IMG/VR virus record: IMGVR_UViG_3300005613_000001
Coordinates: 463,113 to 527,112 of that record
DNA length: 64,000 nt
Direction: 5' to 3' (one strand)
Of this stretch, positions 48,664 to 55,164 are shown one piece after another. The first letter of the stretch is position 1. Each line of letters opens with the position of its first letter. The notes under the pieces are model-generated. The model was not told where the DNA came from, made no database searches, and worked only from the letters and a program-made list of their open reading frames with translations. Made by a program: the position numbers and the translations under genes.

Positions 48664-50283
48664 ATGAGAACATTTAAAGAATACGTTTCATTAAAAGAGG
48701 CGGCTGGAAAAGAGTCAAGCGGGGAGAATATTGTTGCCAAAAATACCACTATCTTAGGTAAAGATGAAGAAGGCGTTGAACCCTTCATGGTTGGCGCACA
48801 ATATAACCGGAAAAACCTTGGCACACTTGTTAAAGCATTTCTTGCCAGCCCCGAAGTAGAATTTGGTCCCAATATGCTTGATAGCAAAGCCACGACAAAC
48901 CCAGGGCAAAGCACAAGCGGTTTGACCAAAAACAAGCTAAAAAAGAAGACCTTGTATCTCGTTGGAGGGGCAGTAAGAGATCACATGTTGGGCCAAACCC
49001 CCAGTGATTATGACTTGGCTACCGATGCTACAATGGATGAAATCCGCCTCATTTTAAAACATGCTGGATTTGCAGAACTTAGACCACAAACTGCGGTGGA
49101 TAAGAAAAAAGAGGATAAAAAGCCTGATCCAAAATACGACAATCTCCCCGCTGCTTCTGATAATCCGAAAAAGTTCTATGTAAAAGGCACAGACATTAAA
49201 GGCACAGAATTCGTCATGGGAGCTAAAATTCATGGCGAAGAATTTGAAATTGCCACCTTTAGAAAAGATTCCAAAGGGGAAAGCGACGGTAGAACAACTC
49301 GTATGAGCTTCACACCCAAGCTTGAAGAGGACGCTGCAAGGCGTGATTTTACAGTCAATTCAATGTATATCCCACTAACAAGTGAGAATGGCCCAAATAA
49401 TAAATTAATTGATATTTATGGTGGGGTGAGAGACTTAAAACGCAAAAAAGTAAGATTCGTAGGCGATCCAAAAGAAAGATTAGAAGAAGATGAATTGCGG
49501 GCTCTTCGTTATGCTAGATTTGCCTCAATTTTTGAAGATTTGGACATGCCAGATGATATTGTAGATGCCATCGGACAAATGGCTGGACTTAAATCTCTAC
49601 AACCGTTCACTGATAAAGCAGGAAGGCAAAGAGATAGAAGAAAAAGAATTCGTGATGAATTCTTAAAAACAATGAAGAAGGCAAGTGTTAATCCTAAAAA
49701 ATACTTGATGGCGTTAAAAAGACTAGGATTAATACCAGCTATATTCCCTAATTTAAAAATTAGATTAGATGGGCCTGATGATATAAGCGATAAAAGAGAA
49801 AAACATTTAGCTATCGCCTGGTTGCTTAAAGACAATGATCCAGCTAGTGTTTATAGTATACTTACAGATGCACACTGGACTCAAGATGAAGCAAAGCGAA
49901 TTAGTTTTCTAATTAAATTCCTTCACTTCCACCCAGAAATTGATCCTGATAACCTCAACCAAATGTCTTCTGCTTTTATGAAAAGTGGCTTATCAAGTGG
50001 TTACCTCGGCGGAAAAGAAATGGGACAAAAATCACTACTTTCAACTTGGGCTCAAATGAATCCTGATAGATTCCCCGAAGGCTCTGTTGATGCTTTCTTG
50101 AAACACGTTAGCCACGGCCCAATTAAAGTATCCCATGAAGATCCAATGTTCGCTGATTTGTTCGTAGTTGATCCCTTCAGCGGCAAAAGGCGTGGAACAC
50201 CAGGCATTGCACAAAGACAAGCAGAATTGGCACATAAGAGATTTTTAGATATCTTTAAAAGCGGCCAAGCAAAAAATGTATGA
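48664..50283 (+). CDS. cca: Class II CCA-adding tRNA nucleotidyltransferase
   Basis: LYLVGGAVRD...DYDLAT, EIATFR, DAARRDFTVN, D..GG..DL, EDELRALRYARF; no HD domain; no poly(A)-polymerase G(R/K)(R/K)F signature. Confidence 0.9.
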   Translation: MRTFKEYVSLKEAAGKESSGENIVAKNTTILGKDEEGVEPFMVGAQYNRKNLGTLVKAFLASPEVEFGPNMLDSKATTNPGQSTSGLTKNKLKKKTLYLVGGAVRDHMLGQTPSDYDLATDATMDEIRLILKHAGFAELRPQTAVDKKKEDKKPDPKYDNLPAASDNPKKFYVKGTDIKGTEFVMGAKIHGEEFEIATFRKDSKGESDGRTTRMSFTPKLEEDAARRDFTVNSMYIPLTSENGPNNKLIDIYGGVRDLKRKKVRFVGDPKERLEEDELRALRYARFASIFEDLDMPDDIVDAIGQMAGLKSLQPFTDKAGRQRDRRKRIRDEFLKTMKKASVNPKKYLMALKRLGLIPAIFPNLKIRLDGPDDISDKREKHLAIAWLLKDNDPASVYSILTDAHWTQDEAKRISFLIKFLHFHPEIDPDNLNQMSSAFMKSGLSSGYLGGKEMGQKSLLSTWAQMNPDRFPEGSVDAFLKHVSHGPIKVSHEDPMFADLFVVDPFSGKRRGTPGIAQRQAELAHKRFLDIFKSGQAKNV

Positions 50284-51019
50284 ACTTAATGTCTTAACTT
50301 GTAGACCTGATTACTTTTATATCACCCTGGCATCTTTGTTGTCTTCCGATTGGACCGATGATATTAATATATGCCTGGGTGTGGCAAATGGAAGATATAT
50401 TACACAATACCTGCAAGAAGGTAGAATTAAATTAAGAAGATTACATACTAAAAAATCTTATGCTGAAATTAAAGAATGGTTGAAACAAAGACAAGCCTCT
50501 TGGAATTTCTCTAAAATATTAAGAGGCGCTAATAGAAATAAAAGGGGCATCTTTGTTCTTGAAGATGATATAATTCTAAATCCCGATTGGTTCGCACACG
50601 CACATGAAGTAATAAATGAAATAGAAAAAATATCAGATAAGTTCATTCTGTCCATATATAGCCCACATAGGAAAATGGAAGTGGGTGAAAACGGTTTCGC
50701 AGAATACCCAATTGATAGGTTCTTTGGCACGCAAGGGATGTATTACACTCCTTCTGTTGCAATTAAATTGGGGCGGTTCCTACGCGATGGTAATTACCAG
50801 CCAGGACATGATGTGATGATGCATGATTTTTGCAAAGATGAGAAAATAAAAGTGTATGTTCCAAACCGCATAACAATTCAACATATTGGTGAGAAATCAG
50901 CATTTCATGGCACCACGCTCAAAAAAGGACAAGGACCAGTACCCGGTTACTTGTGGCCGACAACTTACGAAATGCCACACTTCCACACTTCAAAGAAATA
51001 CAAGCATCAAAATCTCTAA
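50276..51019 (+). CDS. GT-A fold glycosyltransferase (GT25/GT2-like)
   Basis: IFVLEDDIIL, FGTQGMYY, D.MM, IQHIG. Confidence 0.7.
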   Translation: MYELNVLTCRPDYFYITLASLLSSDWTDDINICLGVANGRYITQYLQEGRIKLRRLHTKKSYAEIKEWLKQRQASWNFSKILRGANRNKRGIFVLEDDIILNPDWFAHAHEVINEIEKISDKFILSIYSPHRKMEVGENGFAEYPIDRFFGTQGMYYTPSVAIKLGRFLRDGNYQPGHDVMMHDFCKDEKIKVYVPNRITIQHIGEKSAFHGTTLKKGQGPVPGYLWPTTYEMPHFHTSKKYKHQNL

Positions 51020-51022
51020 TCG

Positions 51023-51063
51023 AAAAGAAAGACCCCTTATCGTTGTTTCCAACAATAAGGGGT
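51023..51063 (-). terminator. Intrinsic terminator ending the ncRNA transcript
   Basis: ACCCCTTATTGTTG-GAAA-CAACGATAAGGGGT then CTTTCTTTT on the minus strand. Confidence 0.88.
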
Positions 51064-52045
51064 ATTCCCAGCAAGCACGTTCAGGATTCAGCACTCGTTA
51101 GAATAACTAAACCCTCCATTGAGTTCCATCACCTTTTGCCAGTCTCCGCAGGTAGTGCTTACCTTGAGGCTTTTAACCTCACCGCACGCAATTGGTATAA
51201 CCTACGGCGTGATAGTTGTGGGTAGTTTACCTGTTACTTGAACTTTCCGTGCTTCTGATGATTAAATTCCAACATGCTGCTGTTACCACAGTTTAGCTGG
51301 GCCTAATCTCAGGGTGTCACTTGAGCCCTTATAACGGCTCTACTCCTCAACTTCCCATTTTGTTTCGTGGTTGGATTCCACGTCGTTTCTGAATGCCATT
51401 AGGTTGGCATTAGGCTCAACGTTGCTATACAGCCCGACGACTGTGCCCGATATTCTCGGGGGATTTGCTCACAAGCAACTGGCTGCTTGTGGTCTATCCC
51501 GCAACGTGCTAGGGTGTCAGTAAATCCTCAGTTTATCGGCACCAAGCGATCACTTGGCTCCGTATCCGACTGAAGATGCTGATGTTGGGCTGACTTTGTT
51601 CCTTGTCACATTTCTGCGCACAAGGTTTATGTGCCAATCCCACCCTCTAGACGCTTACCACGTTAAATTCGCCTGACTGACAGTTCAGACAAAACCTAAT
51701 ATGGTTGGAAGAGAGACCTACAAATTAATGCTGGGTAGCTGTCAACAACCCGTCTCTAATCCACGCCTCGCATCGAAGCCTGCCTGTGAGTATCCGGTTT
51801 GAATTCTCAGACTTTGCCGTTTCGGCGCTGTCTGTTTCATCATTCCGTGACTTCAAGCTAAAAGGCTCTTTAGAATACCCGTCCGAAGACAAGCTCCCTT
51901 GGATACCTCCGCCTGAGAGTCCCCACCCCTTTTTATGCGGATTGGGGTTTTGTACCCGTGGTCCTATTTTTCAAGAGCCATCGGGTTCCACAGGACTCCT
52001 TGAGGCCACTTACACTTTACAGTATAAGTGCGGAACTCAGTACCA
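51064..52045 (-). ncRNA. ~1-kb highly structured non-coding RNA (GOLLD/ROOL-class candidate)
   Basis: No credible minus-strand ORF; dense hairpins with GNRA/UUCG loops; long-range TGAGTTCC (52039-52032)/GGAACTCA (51127-51120) closing helix; boxA upstream, terminator downstream. Confidence 0.8.
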
Positions 52046-52048
52046 AAT

Positions 52049-52060
52049 TGTCAAAGATCA
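52049..52060 (-). promoter_or_regulatory. boxA antitermination element
   Basis: TGATCTTTGACA vs rrn boxA TGCTCTTTAACA. Confidence 0.75.
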
Positions 52061-52063
52061 AAG

Positions 52064-52235
52064 TGAACAGAGCAGGGCTTGCACCTGCATTTCCTGGTTT
52101 ATCTAGTAGTTAAACTAAATTCCCAAGCGTTCTACAAAATTGATACACCTGTTGGGGTGTCCTCTAATCTCAACTTACCGGAGGCAGTGATAAAATTAGA
52201 GGCGAGATCAACTCCGTTAATTGAACTATCTGTTC
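52064..52235 (-). ncRNA. tRNA-like RNA B (172 nt) with 90-nt D-loop domain and extended anticodon arm
   Basis: GAACAGA/TCTGTTC acceptor, U8A9, GTTC/GAAC D-stem, CTTGG/CCAGG stem, AAAT, GCAGG-TGCAAGC-CCTGC T-arm, A73. Confidence 0.8.
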
Positions 52236-52236
52236 A

Positions 52237-52368
52237 GGCGAACAGGGCAGGATTCTCACCTGCATTTCCGGTAGCGGTGCTTTGGACAACGCTTCCAGCG
52301 TTTTGCACTATTCACTTGACACTGCCGGATGGCCGAGCAACTAATTAGTGCAGTTAAACTACCTGTTC
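52237..52368 (-). ncRNA. tRNA-like RNA A (130 nt plus encoded CC) with 52-nt D-loop domain and extended anticodon arm
   Basis: GAACAGG/CCTGTTC acceptor, U8A9, GTTT/AAAC D-stem, CTGG/CCGG stem, AAAT, GCAGG-TGAGAAT-CCTGC T-arm, G73-C-C. Confidence 0.8.
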
Positions 52369-52380
52369 TTGTGTTTCGTT

Positions 52381-52512
52381 CCCAGCATTTTAACAAATCA
52401 TTTGGCTGTGTCAAGCCCAATTTTTTGTCCGGTCTGCTGAGTAACCTTTGCCTTCTTCTCTGTTCTGTGCCCAGCATTTTAACAAATCATTTGGCTGTGT
52501 CAAGCCCAATTT
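52381..52512 (-). promoter_or_regulatory. Tandem duplicated sigma70 promoters (43-bp exact direct repeat, 89-bp period)
   Basis: Each copy TTGACA-N16-TAAAAT with extended -10 TG; -35 at 52503-52498 and 52414-52409. Confidence 0.88.
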
Positions 52513-52529
52513 GTTCGGACTGCTGGTGA

Positions 52530-52835
52530 CCTTTTGCTAAATTTTTCTCAATTCACTTATCAACCGTAGTTGATGCATTGTGATTGCGAATGGCTTTAGC
52601 TGCCTGGGTTCCCTCCACATGATTGACAACTTTTCCGAAGAGGTTGTCACAGTTTTTTTTCAGGGCTCCTCTTGTACTCCGTTGCCACACGGGCGGGTTC
52701 CCAAATCTCTCAAGGTGGCTTTATGATAACGACTTCTCCTCTTCTGTCAAGGGCAGAAGTTTGGGGATCGCTGCCTCTCTCCCTAGAGGCAGCAATTCCC
52801 CAGGAGCGTTAAAGGCTTCCATCGCCACCGATTGT
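52530..52835 (-). ncRNA. Second structured ncRNA candidate (~300 nt)
   Basis: GGTGGC/GCCACC enclosing helix, 16-bp GGGGA..CCTCT/AGAGG..TCCCC hairpin, cUUCGg and cUACGg loops; preceded by boxA. Confidence 0.6.
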
Positions 52836-52836
52836 G

Positions 52837-52864
52837 TTTTCAAAGAACGTTTGCCCCGAAGGAC
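52837..52864 (-). promoter_or_regulatory. boxB-like hairpin plus boxA
   Basis: GTCC-TTCG-GGGC hairpin followed by CGTTCTTTGAAAA. Confidence 0.7.
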
Positions 52865-52908
52865 GAGAGCCAAGTATAGCGGTTTGCCAAATCCATGCAA
52901 CCCCAATT

Positions 52909-55164
52909 TCACCGCTTGGAGGACTTTTTCTTGGAGAAGCGTAGCTTTTTAAATTTTCTACGCATATTGTCTTTTTTGTCTATCTCACCAGGAGGGTCGG
53001 AGTCACCGCATTGTCCCCTAAATGCCCCGCTTCCATCACCACTAGAAGAAAATGTATTCAGATCACCGTCTTCCCAAAAGCGGTTTTCTCCAAGACTACC
53101 GAGGAACTCACTATGATGTTTCCGAATATCAGCAGCATCTTTGGAACTAATTATACCTAATTTCTGTTGAAAGTCTATCCAATCACTAAGGGCTTCGCCT
53201 CCCCATGATATTCTTTCAAACCCGCTTAGTTTATTAAGAGGTTTAAACCGTACTGCTTTATCAATATGGTCTAACTTTTCTTCTCCTGGGTAGTTAATTT
53301 GGAAGAATTTTTTAGCCCTACGAATATTTGGTACAAATGCCTGGCCGTAAGATTTCCTGTCAGGAAGCTCATCTGATTCCATTGCATCGTGAAGATGCTT
53401 AAGCCTTCTTAAGAATTCGGACATATACACTTTCATGTCGGCATCTTGCATTGCTTGATCGTAAAACCTTTTAAGTATTTGACGATTATTCAAGGATGGT
53501 TTTTCTTTTGTTAATTTTCGCCAAGAATAAACTAAGTGTATTGCATGTGTTGTCTGTCTTATTGCTCTTTTTTCCCAATCTTCACGCTTTGAATCTACTG
53601 CCGCCTCTATTACTTCAAGCGTTTTCCTTAGAGTTGTTTCCAAAGAATGTTTTGTCATTTCCTCTGTGGTGCCTCTAATTGAAGAGCGATTTTTATAACC
53701 GGATGATCTACCATAGGAAACTATACTGTGAGCGCCTCTGTCTTCATCCCAATAATCAGCTTCATCTTTTAGATTGTTAAACCAATCATTGAATTCCCCG
53801 GTTAATTCAACCGAATCACTTATATCAAAATCTTGAGGAAGTCCTTTCCGTTTCCTCCACTCCGCCTTTAGGAAACTTTTCCACAAATTCATATCCCAAA
53901 GATATTCATTAGAAACTTTATATTGTCTTCTAAATTGATCTGCTAATTGGGCATATTTCAAACTAGGTCGTCCTTCAACTTGTTTATGTGTAGGATTTTC
54001 AAAGTTTGGAACTGTTGCAACGTGTTCCCAAGTACCAGGCGTAAGAAAAACAGCTTGCGTTGGCTCAGACGCATAAATAGTATCCGTCCCTATATCAGAG
54101 ATCCCAGAGACTCCCATTTTTCTTAGAATAGCTGACCACGTAATCCACGGGCGAGTATCACTAAGTTTGTCTGACCATCGTTTTGCCACCTGATAGAGAA
54201 CACCTATATCTGAATTGAAGCTATTTGATTTCACCCATTCTTTTGTTTTCTCAAAATCAACCTCAGGATGTTTTTCAGCAAATTTTTTCAACACATCCTC
54301 AAAAGGAATTCTACCCTGTTTACCCCTTTTGATTAATCTTTTTACATGCGTCCAATATTCTTTAAGTGTCTTGTTTATAAAGCGTATTGATTTTTCGCCA
54401 AGATTTTCTTCAATATCTAAATACTCACTGTTTTTCAAAATATCCCAAAAACCATCAACAAGCTCGTCCCAATTCACCTTTTTTATATCTCTAATAGAAC
54501 CAGACAAAGTAAGACTTTTATAAAGTGACTGCTGTAATGAATCTAGTGCTCTTGCTATCACTTGATACCATTGAACTTCATCCCTGGGTTCTCCAAAAAA
54601 CTCCTCAAGGTCTTCATTTTCTATTTTCCACACTTTCTGTAAGTGCTTAGAGATAACCATTCTATACTGATTTAACAAATACAAAGGATCTCGCCCGGCA
54701 TTGATAGACGAAGTTTGCATCATCTTGCCTTTATCATTCTTCTTCTTTGTTATTAAGACTTGAATCCAAGGCTTAGCAGAGGCAAACAAATCATCTGGGT
54801 TATCTCTCATCATTTTGATTGCATAACGAATTGGATATGCATAAAGACCTATAGGCGTCTCTGTCCATGTTGTCTTGGGATTAATGCCTAATTTTTCAAG
54901 ATCAGTGAAACTAACCCATATTTCCTTGGGATGTACACCTTTAGTTTTTAAAGCTTTTTTAATAAACTCTAAATGTGTTATTCTTTCATCATAACGATAT
55001 GTCCGCCCCGTTTTTGGATTGATAAGAGGGTGTTTCACATGGGCGGGAACTATCTTCTTTTGACCTTCTAAGATAGACTCAATGAGCATCTCCATCTCCG
55101 TGTTGTGGAGATCAAGTAAAATGTCCTCACATTCGGAGGTTATTAAATACTCAGAGAACTTCAT
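52909..55164 (-). CDS. Large probable virion internal protein (start reassigned to MKFSEYL)
   Basis: ATG at 55164 preceded by TATAAATA; capsid-targeting-like start; KLGINP..TP.G.Y.YP and GVSGISD.G...EPTQAVF motifs. Confidence 0.7.
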   Translation of the reverse strand: MKFSEYLITSECEDILLDLHNTEMEMLIESILEGQKKIVPAHVKHPLINPKTGRTYRYDERITHLEFIKKALKTKGVHPKEIWVSFTDLEKLGINPKTTWTETPIGLYAYPIRYAIKMMRDNPDDLFASAKPWIQVLITKKKNDKGKMMQTSSINAGRDPLYLLNQYRMVISKHLQKVWKIENEDLEEFFGEPRDEVQWYQVIARALDSLQQSLYKSLTLSGSIRDIKKVNWDELVDGFWDILKNSEYLDIEENLGEKSIRFINKTLKEYWTHVKRLIKRGKQGRIPFEDVLKKFAEKHPEVDFEKTKEWVKSNSFNSDIGVLYQVAKRWSDKLSDTRPWITWSAILRKMGVSGISDIGTDTIYASEPTQAVFLTPGTWEHVATVPNFENPTHKQVEGRPSLKYAQLADQFRRQYKVSNEYLWDMNLWKSFLKAEWRKRKGLPQDFDISDSVELTGEFNDWFNNLKDEADYWDEDRGAHSIVSYGRSSGYKNRSSIRGTTEEMTKHSLETTLRKTLEVIEAAVDSKREDWEKRAIRQTTHAIHLVYSWRKLTKEKPSLNNRQILKRFYDQAMQDADMKVYMSEFLRRLKHLHDAMESDELPDRKSYGQAFVPNIRRAKKFFQINYPGEEKLDHIDKAVRFKPLNKLSGFERISWGGEALSDWIDFQQKLGIISSKDAADIRKHHSEFLGSLGENRFWEDGDLNTFSSSGDGSGAFRGQCGDSDPPGEIDKKDNMRRKFKKLRFSKKKSSKR

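Follow-up and report, generated by a model that had tools for sequence, protein, structure and literature searches.

In bacterial rrn operons 5S RNA and spacer tRNAs are co-transcribed, and the tRNA operon of phage T4 carries the small stable species 1 and 2 RNAs. The boxA of E. coli reads GCUCUUUAACAA. In rrn operons a boxB-boxA-boxC set stands just after the promoters, a second set follows further down the operon, and the leader is removed during maturation (PMC10250234). BoxA binds NusB/NusE and shields long untranslated RNA from Rho (PMC4807359). Lambdoid nut sites (boxA plus boxB, with protein N) also place a phage-borne boxA beside a hairpin, upstream of terminator-like structures (PMC4807359, PMC10250234).

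Here we describe a locus in a half-megabase phage whose layout resembles that of the rrn control region. A sequence-only reading had assigned the minus-strand stretch at 52530-52835 to a separate structured RNA of about 300 nt. Because of the match with the published rrn layout, we read the stretch instead as the upstream structured leader and promoter array of an rrn-operon-like unit making an RNA of ∼970 nt, and give this reading about an even chance of being right. Like a bacterial rrn control region, the locus has several strong, same-strand sigma-70 promoters in tandem (predicted here), a promoter with a small hairpin and then a boxA right behind it, another boxA immediately ahead of the mature RNA, an extended structured leader that is missing from the mature product, and an untranslated stable RNA as the product. 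Unlike in rrn operons, the product is an unknown phage RNA of ∼970 nt with no Rfam match rather than an rRNA, four predicted promoters occupy about 500 nt, with stretches of structured RNA separating them, neither a clear boxC nor a long leader-trailer helix was found, and Nus dependence is putative.

The window, that is, the whole stretch of DNA analysed, comprises 64,000 nt and corresponds to bases 463113-527112 of a 527,112-bp virus record. Translation table 11 reads its ORFs normally. The element at 52530-52835 (minus strand) sits in a 1.9-kb gap (51020-52909) without credible ORFs, which gene callers also left empty in two other assemblies of the same phage. On one side the gap is bordered by a minus-strand gene of 751/804 aa, with its stop codon at 52911-52909, and on the other by a plus-strand gene for a 247-aa protein (50276-51019), followed outward by a plus-strand gene for an enzyme of the CCA-adding/poly(A) polymerase family (48664-50283). 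The G+C content of the gap is 0.45-0.51, and that of the coding sequence beyond it in either direction roughly 0.32-0.43. Searches of PHROGs and Pfam with the neighbouring genes were uninformative except for the CCA-adding enzyme, an HSP20 and a methyltransferase.

In our searches the gap matched no described RNA gene. Rfam 15 gave no match to any family (RNase P, SRP, 6S, tmRNA, ribozymes and riboswitches among them) at the gathering score in the whole window, and at E<=10 only two chance-level hits (E 0.37 and 3) in 50900-53000, which supports the earlier view that the stretch fits no known RNA family. ARAGORN detected neither tRNA nor tmRNA in the window, blastn found no match to the gap among GenBank phages, and we found no description of such an RNA in the literature. 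The genome as a whole has 59 tRNA genes, two of them of the suppressor type; these two are adjacent, carry the anticodons CTA and TTA and lie outside the window (ARAGORN; C1:167265-167425). Two further oddities among the 59 are tRNAs with 4-base anticodon calls.

The same phage was recovered three times at 100% identity (including loci L003 and L004), so these copies carry no comparative information. The 804/751-aa protein has no relatives in IMG/VR, and a word search with it produced only remote matches, whose loci (L002 and L015) are without the RNA gap. No relatives of the CCA-adding enzyme were found in IMG/VR either, and a word search with this enzyme led to two informative loci, both carrying the RNA. 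In L005, whose phage also supplied the IMG/VR contig of L013 and L014, the enzyme is 77% identical and a homologous 1.9-kb gap is present. In L010 the enzyme is 52% identical and a shorter version of the ∼970-nt RNA is found, in the order two tandem promoters, boxA immediately after them, then the RNA; both the 340-nt leader and the upstream element are absent, and a small ORF occupies their place. Using the 247-aa neighbour as a query returned only two short contigs. Motif scans for the RNA and the element returned nothing from viral contigs, or only the L005 phage again (L013/L014), and no carriers from genome contigs. Over all collections searched the element thus has a single independent homologue, in L005, ∼66% identical over the element, and for this reason all comparative statements on the element, covariation included, rest on two sequences.

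The RNA is missing from the CCA-enzyme relatives L007, L008, L009, L011 and L012. Neither the 247-aa gene nor the RNA is present in three of these (L007, L011 and L012, with enzymes about 50% identical). The RNA gene has the CCA-adding enzyme and the 247-aa gene as neighbours in the window, L005 and L010. A functional link between the enzyme and the RNA is possible, for example through tailing of the 3' end of the RNA.

The stable product of the locus was traced in RNA sequencing data. Part of a 2.2-kb stretch of the locus is carried by 13 RNA runs from five studies (sediment, marine, estuary). We compared contigs in four runs from four studies, of which two have near-full-length RNA and a third diverged fragments. 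The 970-nt RNA contig of X1 corresponds exactly to 51071-52040, with >99% identity; the 972-nt RNA contig of X5 is about 97-98% identical with diverged ends; and X14 contains several variants of <90% identity, as fragments; the variants in X5 and X14 span a divergence of 2-15%. Across the four runs, RNA or DNA contigs fall only on 51071-52305 and RNA contigs only on 51071-52040. None covers 52306-53100, with the proviso that contigs show presence, not absence, and that depth is low (9.1) in the run with the identical strain. The best RNA runs contain <=0.42 of the words of the 2.2-kb stretch, which is about the share of the 970-nt RNA alone. The contig limits therefore identify the ∼970-nt RNA at 51071-52040 (minus strand) as the stable product of the operon. 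Its 5' end follows directly on a second boxA (boxA2), and its 3' end falls just short of a strong terminator. At position 51999 the window has C and all four runs, the >99% identical ones among them, have T, pointing to a private variant or an assembly error in the record.

The ∼970-nt RNA is 84% identical in L005, above the flanking coding DNA (70-79%), and a three-sequence alifold consensus contains 41 compensatory pairs. It has the look of a large phage RNA of no known class, and the main interest of the locus lies here. As with GOLLD and ROOL, the RNA is large, structured, highly expressed, phage-borne and of unknown function, a likeness that concerns this neighbouring RNA and not the 306-nt stretch. 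It differs from them in that Rfam gave no match to GOLLD, ROOL, OLE, raiA or HEARO, even at E<=10.

The 5' end of the RNA is abutted by boxA2, TGATCTTTGACAATTTGGTA (52060-52041, minus strand). Its 16-nt core TCTTTGACAATTTGGT, which is close to the rrn boxA of E. coli, has three copies in the 527-kb genome, with copies inside two tRNA clusters (C1:320769-320787 and C1:134430-134450, minus strand); apart from these 19-nt boxA matches and a promoter duplication, the gap has no paralogue in its own genome. The boxA of L010 is GATCTTTGAAAACTTGG. The distribution of the motif suggests that boxA antitermination serves all stable-RNA operons of the phage. Upstream of the RNA lies a structured leader of 340 nt that ends in boxA2 (52041-52380, minus strand; structure conservation index 0.72, z -9.6, 0 of 200 simulations as good). 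Within the leader a ∼30-nt unit, GGAAAUGCAGGUG...CCUGC.CUGUUC, occurs twice (52240-52269 and 52065-52094, minus strand) and folds into a small hairpin; in L005 the GCAGG/CCUGC pairing of the unit is replaced by GUAGG/CCUAC, a compensatory change. At the other end of the operon, an intrinsic terminator with a 14-bp stem and a U-rich tail (51032-51063, minus strand) is conserved in L005. No minus-strand terminator was detected by the terminator scan between 52865 and 52503.

Four promoter-like sites precede the leader on the minus strand. The first, P_a (TTGCAT-16-TATACT, 52900-52873), was found by eye 9 nt after the stop codon of the 751-aa gene. It matches 8 of the 12 consensus positions, which is under the scan threshold, and in L005 both hexamers are identical with 5 of the 16 spacer bases different; we predict it to be a promoter. 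The sequence-only reading had seen no obvious promoter for its RNA, and this is contradicted by P_b (TTGACA-16-TATCAT, 52750-52723), an 11/12 sigma-70 match recovered by the scan inside the claimed fold, with a predicted start near 52716. By our own estimate, about 0.003-0.005 matches of this quality are expected by chance per 380 nt of one strand. The counterpart in L005, TTGACT-16-TATCAT, matches 10 of 12 positions and adds a TG extension, with 6-7 of the 16 spacer bases changed. For both P_a and P_b, then, the hexamers are kept at 16-nt spacing while the spacers have diverged, as would be expected of sites with promoter activity, which is predicted for all promoter-like sites here.

The tandem pair P_c and P_d (TTGACA-16-TAAAAT with a TG extension; 52387-52503, within the region 52381-52512) consists of two identical 43-nt copies 89 nt apart, and L005 has a single copy at this place. 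L005 has instead a 56-nt insertion between positions 52705 and 52704, amounting to a promoter, TTGACT-17-TAAAAT (L005:14024-14079). This cassette is related to P_c/P_d, has a 9-nt inverted repeat on its flanks and sits about 300 nt further upstream. Each lineage has thus gained a promoter on its own, the window by tandem duplication over 89 nt and L005 through the 56-nt cassette, as would fit selection for a high yield of the downstream RNA. The promoter modules of this locus seem to be mobile or prone to duplication.

Between P_a and the element we found the two remaining rrn-like signals. A small hairpin, GUCC-UUCG-GGGC (52853-52864, minus strand), lies just 5' of the upstream boxA, in the position that boxB takes in rrn leaders; in L005 its stem is kept and lengthened by UUU/AAA and the loop is UUUG. 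BoxA1, GTTCTTTGAAAAC (52836-52848, minus strand), resembles the bacterial consensus, is 100% identical in L005 and shares TCTTTGA.AA with the second boxA type of the genome. The sequence-only reading had credited its RNA with a boxA of its own; the motif is real, at 52848-52836, and falls just outside 52530-52835. The order predicted P_a, hairpin, boxA1 and a stable RNA downstream is that of an rrn operon. After boxA1 no conserved GU-rich element is recognisable as boxC, and the segment holds a 9-nt deletion of L005; nor was a conserved long-range (leader-trailer) helix found around the element. A nut site is matched less well, as the placement of the small hairpin 5' of boxA is the rrn and not the nut order, and we identified no protein resembling N. 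H4, the long hairpin that follows boxA on its 3' side, was considered as a lambda-like boxB and rejected, since its loop and spacing are not conserved (34 nt against 25 nt), unlike those of a boxB whose loop is recognised specifically by N.

All helices that had been listed for 52530-52835 are present when the minus strand is read. RNAfold gives this stretch -107.6 kcal/mol, while its dinucleotide shuffles reach -81.4 +/- 5.2 (z -5.0) and none of 100 does as well; over the wider 52530-52910 the z value is -3.4 on the minus strand and -2.8 on the plus strand. The minimum-energy fold contains the enclosing helix GGTGGC/GCCACC (52829-52824 with 52719-52714), the long hairpin and the CTTCTG/CAGAAG hairpin. 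In its middle part it forms UGGCAAC/GUUGUCA plus AAGAGG/CCUCUU. The TGACAAC/GTTGTCA hairpin (52649-52624) that had been described there does exist in the sequence, but RNAfold prefers the competing UGGCAAC/GUUGUCA, and the two are mutually exclusive.

The enclosing helix delimits a multi-branch domain (52714-52829, minus strand) around the helices TAACG/CGTTA (52811-52807 with 52731-52727) and CTCCT/AGGAG (52806-52802 with 52740-52736). L005 has lost the 5' arm of the enclosing helix to a 9-nt gap, and three of the five CTCCT/AGGAG pairs are broken there; TAACG/CGTTA is kept, but its CGTTA arm overlaps the -10 box of P_b. Inside the domain, H4 (52763-52801, minus strand) is a 16-bp hairpin with one bulged A and the loop AGGGAG, and in L005 it is a perfect 15-bp hairpin with a different loop (AUAU). 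One compensatory and three one-sided changes separate the two versions; G-C to G-U is among them and leaves a pair on the minus strand only. What is conserved in H4 is the helix and not the sequence. The alifold energy of H4 is -26.5, whereas substitutions put at random positions yield -7.8 +/- 5.0 and in none of 200 simulations do as well. H4 lies 108 nt past the stop codon of the 751-aa gene. In L005 it is followed by CAAUUUUUGG, a U-rich tail, and the scan flags it as terminator-like; in the window it is followed by AAACUUCUG, a U-poor tail, and is not flagged. H4 may serve to terminate or attenuate transcription, with the boxA complex overriding it, or it may be a site for a double-strand RNase or a 3' stabiliser of the upstream mRNA. 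The neighbouring hairpin H5 (CTTCTG 52759-52754 with CAGAAG 52746-52741; 52741-52759, minus strand) holds the -35 box of P_b in its loop. Compared with L005 it shows one compensatory, one one-sided and one broken pair, and its counterpart there folds as a longer 10-bp version.

Downstream of the multi-branch domain, two stem-loop domains have the same architecture when window and L005 are folded independently. D2 (52604-52704, minus strand) is an extended stem-loop and contains a near-invariant block at 52679-52626, made up of an A8 run and TGACAAC/GTTGTCA. D3 (52536-52600, minus strand) is a stem-loop capped by the invariant TCAAC-TACG-GTTGA (52573-52560) and shows two clean compensatory changes, GCUAAA/UUUAGC to ACUAA/UUAGU and CAC/GUG to CGC/GCG. 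On the plus strand, a hairpin at 52624-52660 with 11 pairs (including G-U) followed by eight T is terminator-like and flagged by the scan; it lies within the most conserved block of the gap, and no obvious plus-strand gene or promoter was found for it.

Conservation between the window and L005 is uneven along the gap. The segment from P_a to boxA is 86% identical, the multi-branch domain 57% (the lowest in the gap), the A8-hairpin block at 52680-52624 95% (the highest in the locus), 52623-52530 63% and the leader 79%. The 55-nt block is thus more conserved than the mature RNA (84%). The structure conservation index is 0.59 for the element, 0.72 for the leader and 0.91 for the mature RNA, and the two-sequence alifold of the element has a column-shuffle z of -8.0 on the minus strand versus -4.8 on the plus strand. 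We then placed the observed number of substitutions at random positions in 200 simulations and compared the consensus energies. On the minus strand none of the 200 simulations equalled the real energy of the multi-branch domain, a result that H4 drives, and none of 200 that of D2 and D3 together; D3 by itself gave 0.01 of simulations as good and D2 by itself a weak 0.09. Values on the plus strand were weaker.

These comparisons support the view that the minus strand carries RNA-level structure under selection, with local elements conserved. H4, D2 and D3 are kept, the enclosing helix is lost and one inner helix is broken, so that it is the local elements and not a single global fold that are conserved between the two sequences. 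The covariation anticipated for a structured RNA is seen in part: H4, D3 and the combination of D2 and D3 are preserved with compensatory changes. The single 300-nt global fold was rejected. The compensatory changes in D3 and the conservation of the 55-nt block beyond that of a passive spacer hint at a function of their own, such as a protein site, a small RNA or a plus-strand terminator.

In the reading we prefer, the array runs in the order P_a, small hairpin, boxA, H4, P_b, D2, D3, P_c/P_d, leader, boxA2 and RNA. Transcription would start from the weak P_a right after the 751-aa gene, and the small hairpin with boxA1 would load the antitermination complex of host NusB/NusE. RNA polymerase could thereby cross about 0.8 kb of untranslated RNA, with P_b acting as a strong internal promoter after H4. 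The leader, including 52530-52835, would be cut off in maturation and would not accumulate.

The initial description of the stretch as an unclassified, structured, non-coding RNA of the minus strand holds in these respects, but the stretch is probably not a separate RNA of ∼300 nt and is not promoterless. Several results speak against such an RNA: the enclosing helix is lost and an inner helix broken in L005; the claimed fold contains the least conserved segment (57%) together with a conserved strong promoter; the 56-nt promoter cassette of L005 is inserted in the middle of the element; no minus-strand terminator precedes the tandem promoters and RNA contigs occur only on 51071-52040; and the element is missing beside the RNA gene of the distant relative L010. 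A separate small non-coding RNA, or a ∼175-nt version made of D2 and D3 and transcribed from P_b, could still be excised from the co-transcript, in the way that T4 species 1 and 2, 5S RNA and spacer tRNAs are structured segments inside a stable-RNA unit. This we hold to be possible but doubtful, and it keeps that standing because D3 covaries and the invariant block exceeds spacer conservation. The minus-strand-specific preservation of structure and the promoter just upstream of D2 in both phages (P_b in the window, the inserted cassette in L005) agree with it, and rrn operons do have a functional RNA between two boxA sets (PMC10250234). Against it, none of the four runs has an RNA contig covering the stretch, though the neighbouring RNA was assembled, there is no 3' end signal before the tandem promoters, the element is absent from L010, the global fold is not conserved, and, unlike the T4, 5S and tRNA examples, no discrete RNA, tRNA-like fold or known (Rfam) family is seen. 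It is likewise doubtful, at a similar level, that the stem-loops at 52704-52536, perhaps with H4, constitute a new class of small phage RNA specific to this lineage, with the near-invariant A8-hairpin block as its functional core. If they do, a new small RNA would be released from the same boxA-protected precursor and act with the 970-nt RNA, as a partner or assembly factor.

The stretch might also be an ordinary 3' UTR of the 751-aa gene, with H4 as its terminator or 3'-end stabiliser and with the promoter- and boxA-like motifs upstream of P_c/P_d non-functional. About 45 long perfect hairpins occur in the genome, most of them at the ends of genes and some lacking U tails; H4 is terminator-like with a U-rich tail in L005, and P_a is a weak match. 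We consider a 3' UTR rather unlikely, given the 11/12 match of P_b, its hexamers kept in L005 next to a diverged spacer, the full conservation of boxA1, the 108 nt between the stop codon and H4, and conserved structure that runs 230 nt beyond it. Another explanation concerns the conserved block only, which could be a plus-strand terminator (52624-52649 plus T8) shielding the promoter array and the 751-aa gene from antisense or convergent transcription, or a double-stranded DNA site for a regulator. On the plus strand 11 pairs form, G-U included, ahead of a run of eight T, and the scan flags this hairpin; the minus strand has only 7 pairs, and the block is 95% identical with no covariation; yet the sole substitution in L005, C to T at 52625, keeps a G-U pair on the minus strand and leaves an A-C mismatch on the plus strand, no convincing plus-strand promoter or gene feeds such a terminator, and structure preservation favours the minus strand, making this account quite improbable. 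That the stretch encodes a small protein is scarcely credible. Three ORFs exist (63 aa at 52721-52912, 45 aa at 52553-52690 and 37 aa at 52537-52650), and the 45-aa ORF has KKNCDNLFGKVV and TTVD in common with the peptide of an ORF in L005, but the shared peptide merely mirrors the invariant nucleotides. A 1-nt insertion in L005 leaves just 26 aa of the 63-aa frame, in which a conserved protein would have spoken against an RNA; the 45-aa frame is a different one ahead of the A8 run, has no shared start codon and is frame-shifted over about 8 middle codons; and the 37-aa ORF is 16 aa long in L005. Pfam gave no hit. With all candidate frames truncated or frame-shifted in L005, coding by small ORFs was rejected.

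On the preferred reading of an rrn-like leader and promoter array, the candidate new class of non-coding RNA is replaced by a picture of the leader of a large-RNA operon. A half-megabase phage makes a large unknown RNA, seen in metatranscriptomes from several environments, behind signals like those of an rRNA operon: multiple strong promoters, a boxA also present in tRNA clusters, and a long discarded leader. These signals suggest that the phage uses the rRNA transcription machinery of its host for its own stable RNAs. Handles on how and when this large RNA is produced are provided by the four predicted promoters, the two boxA sites, the conserved hairpin and the two covarying stem-loop domains.
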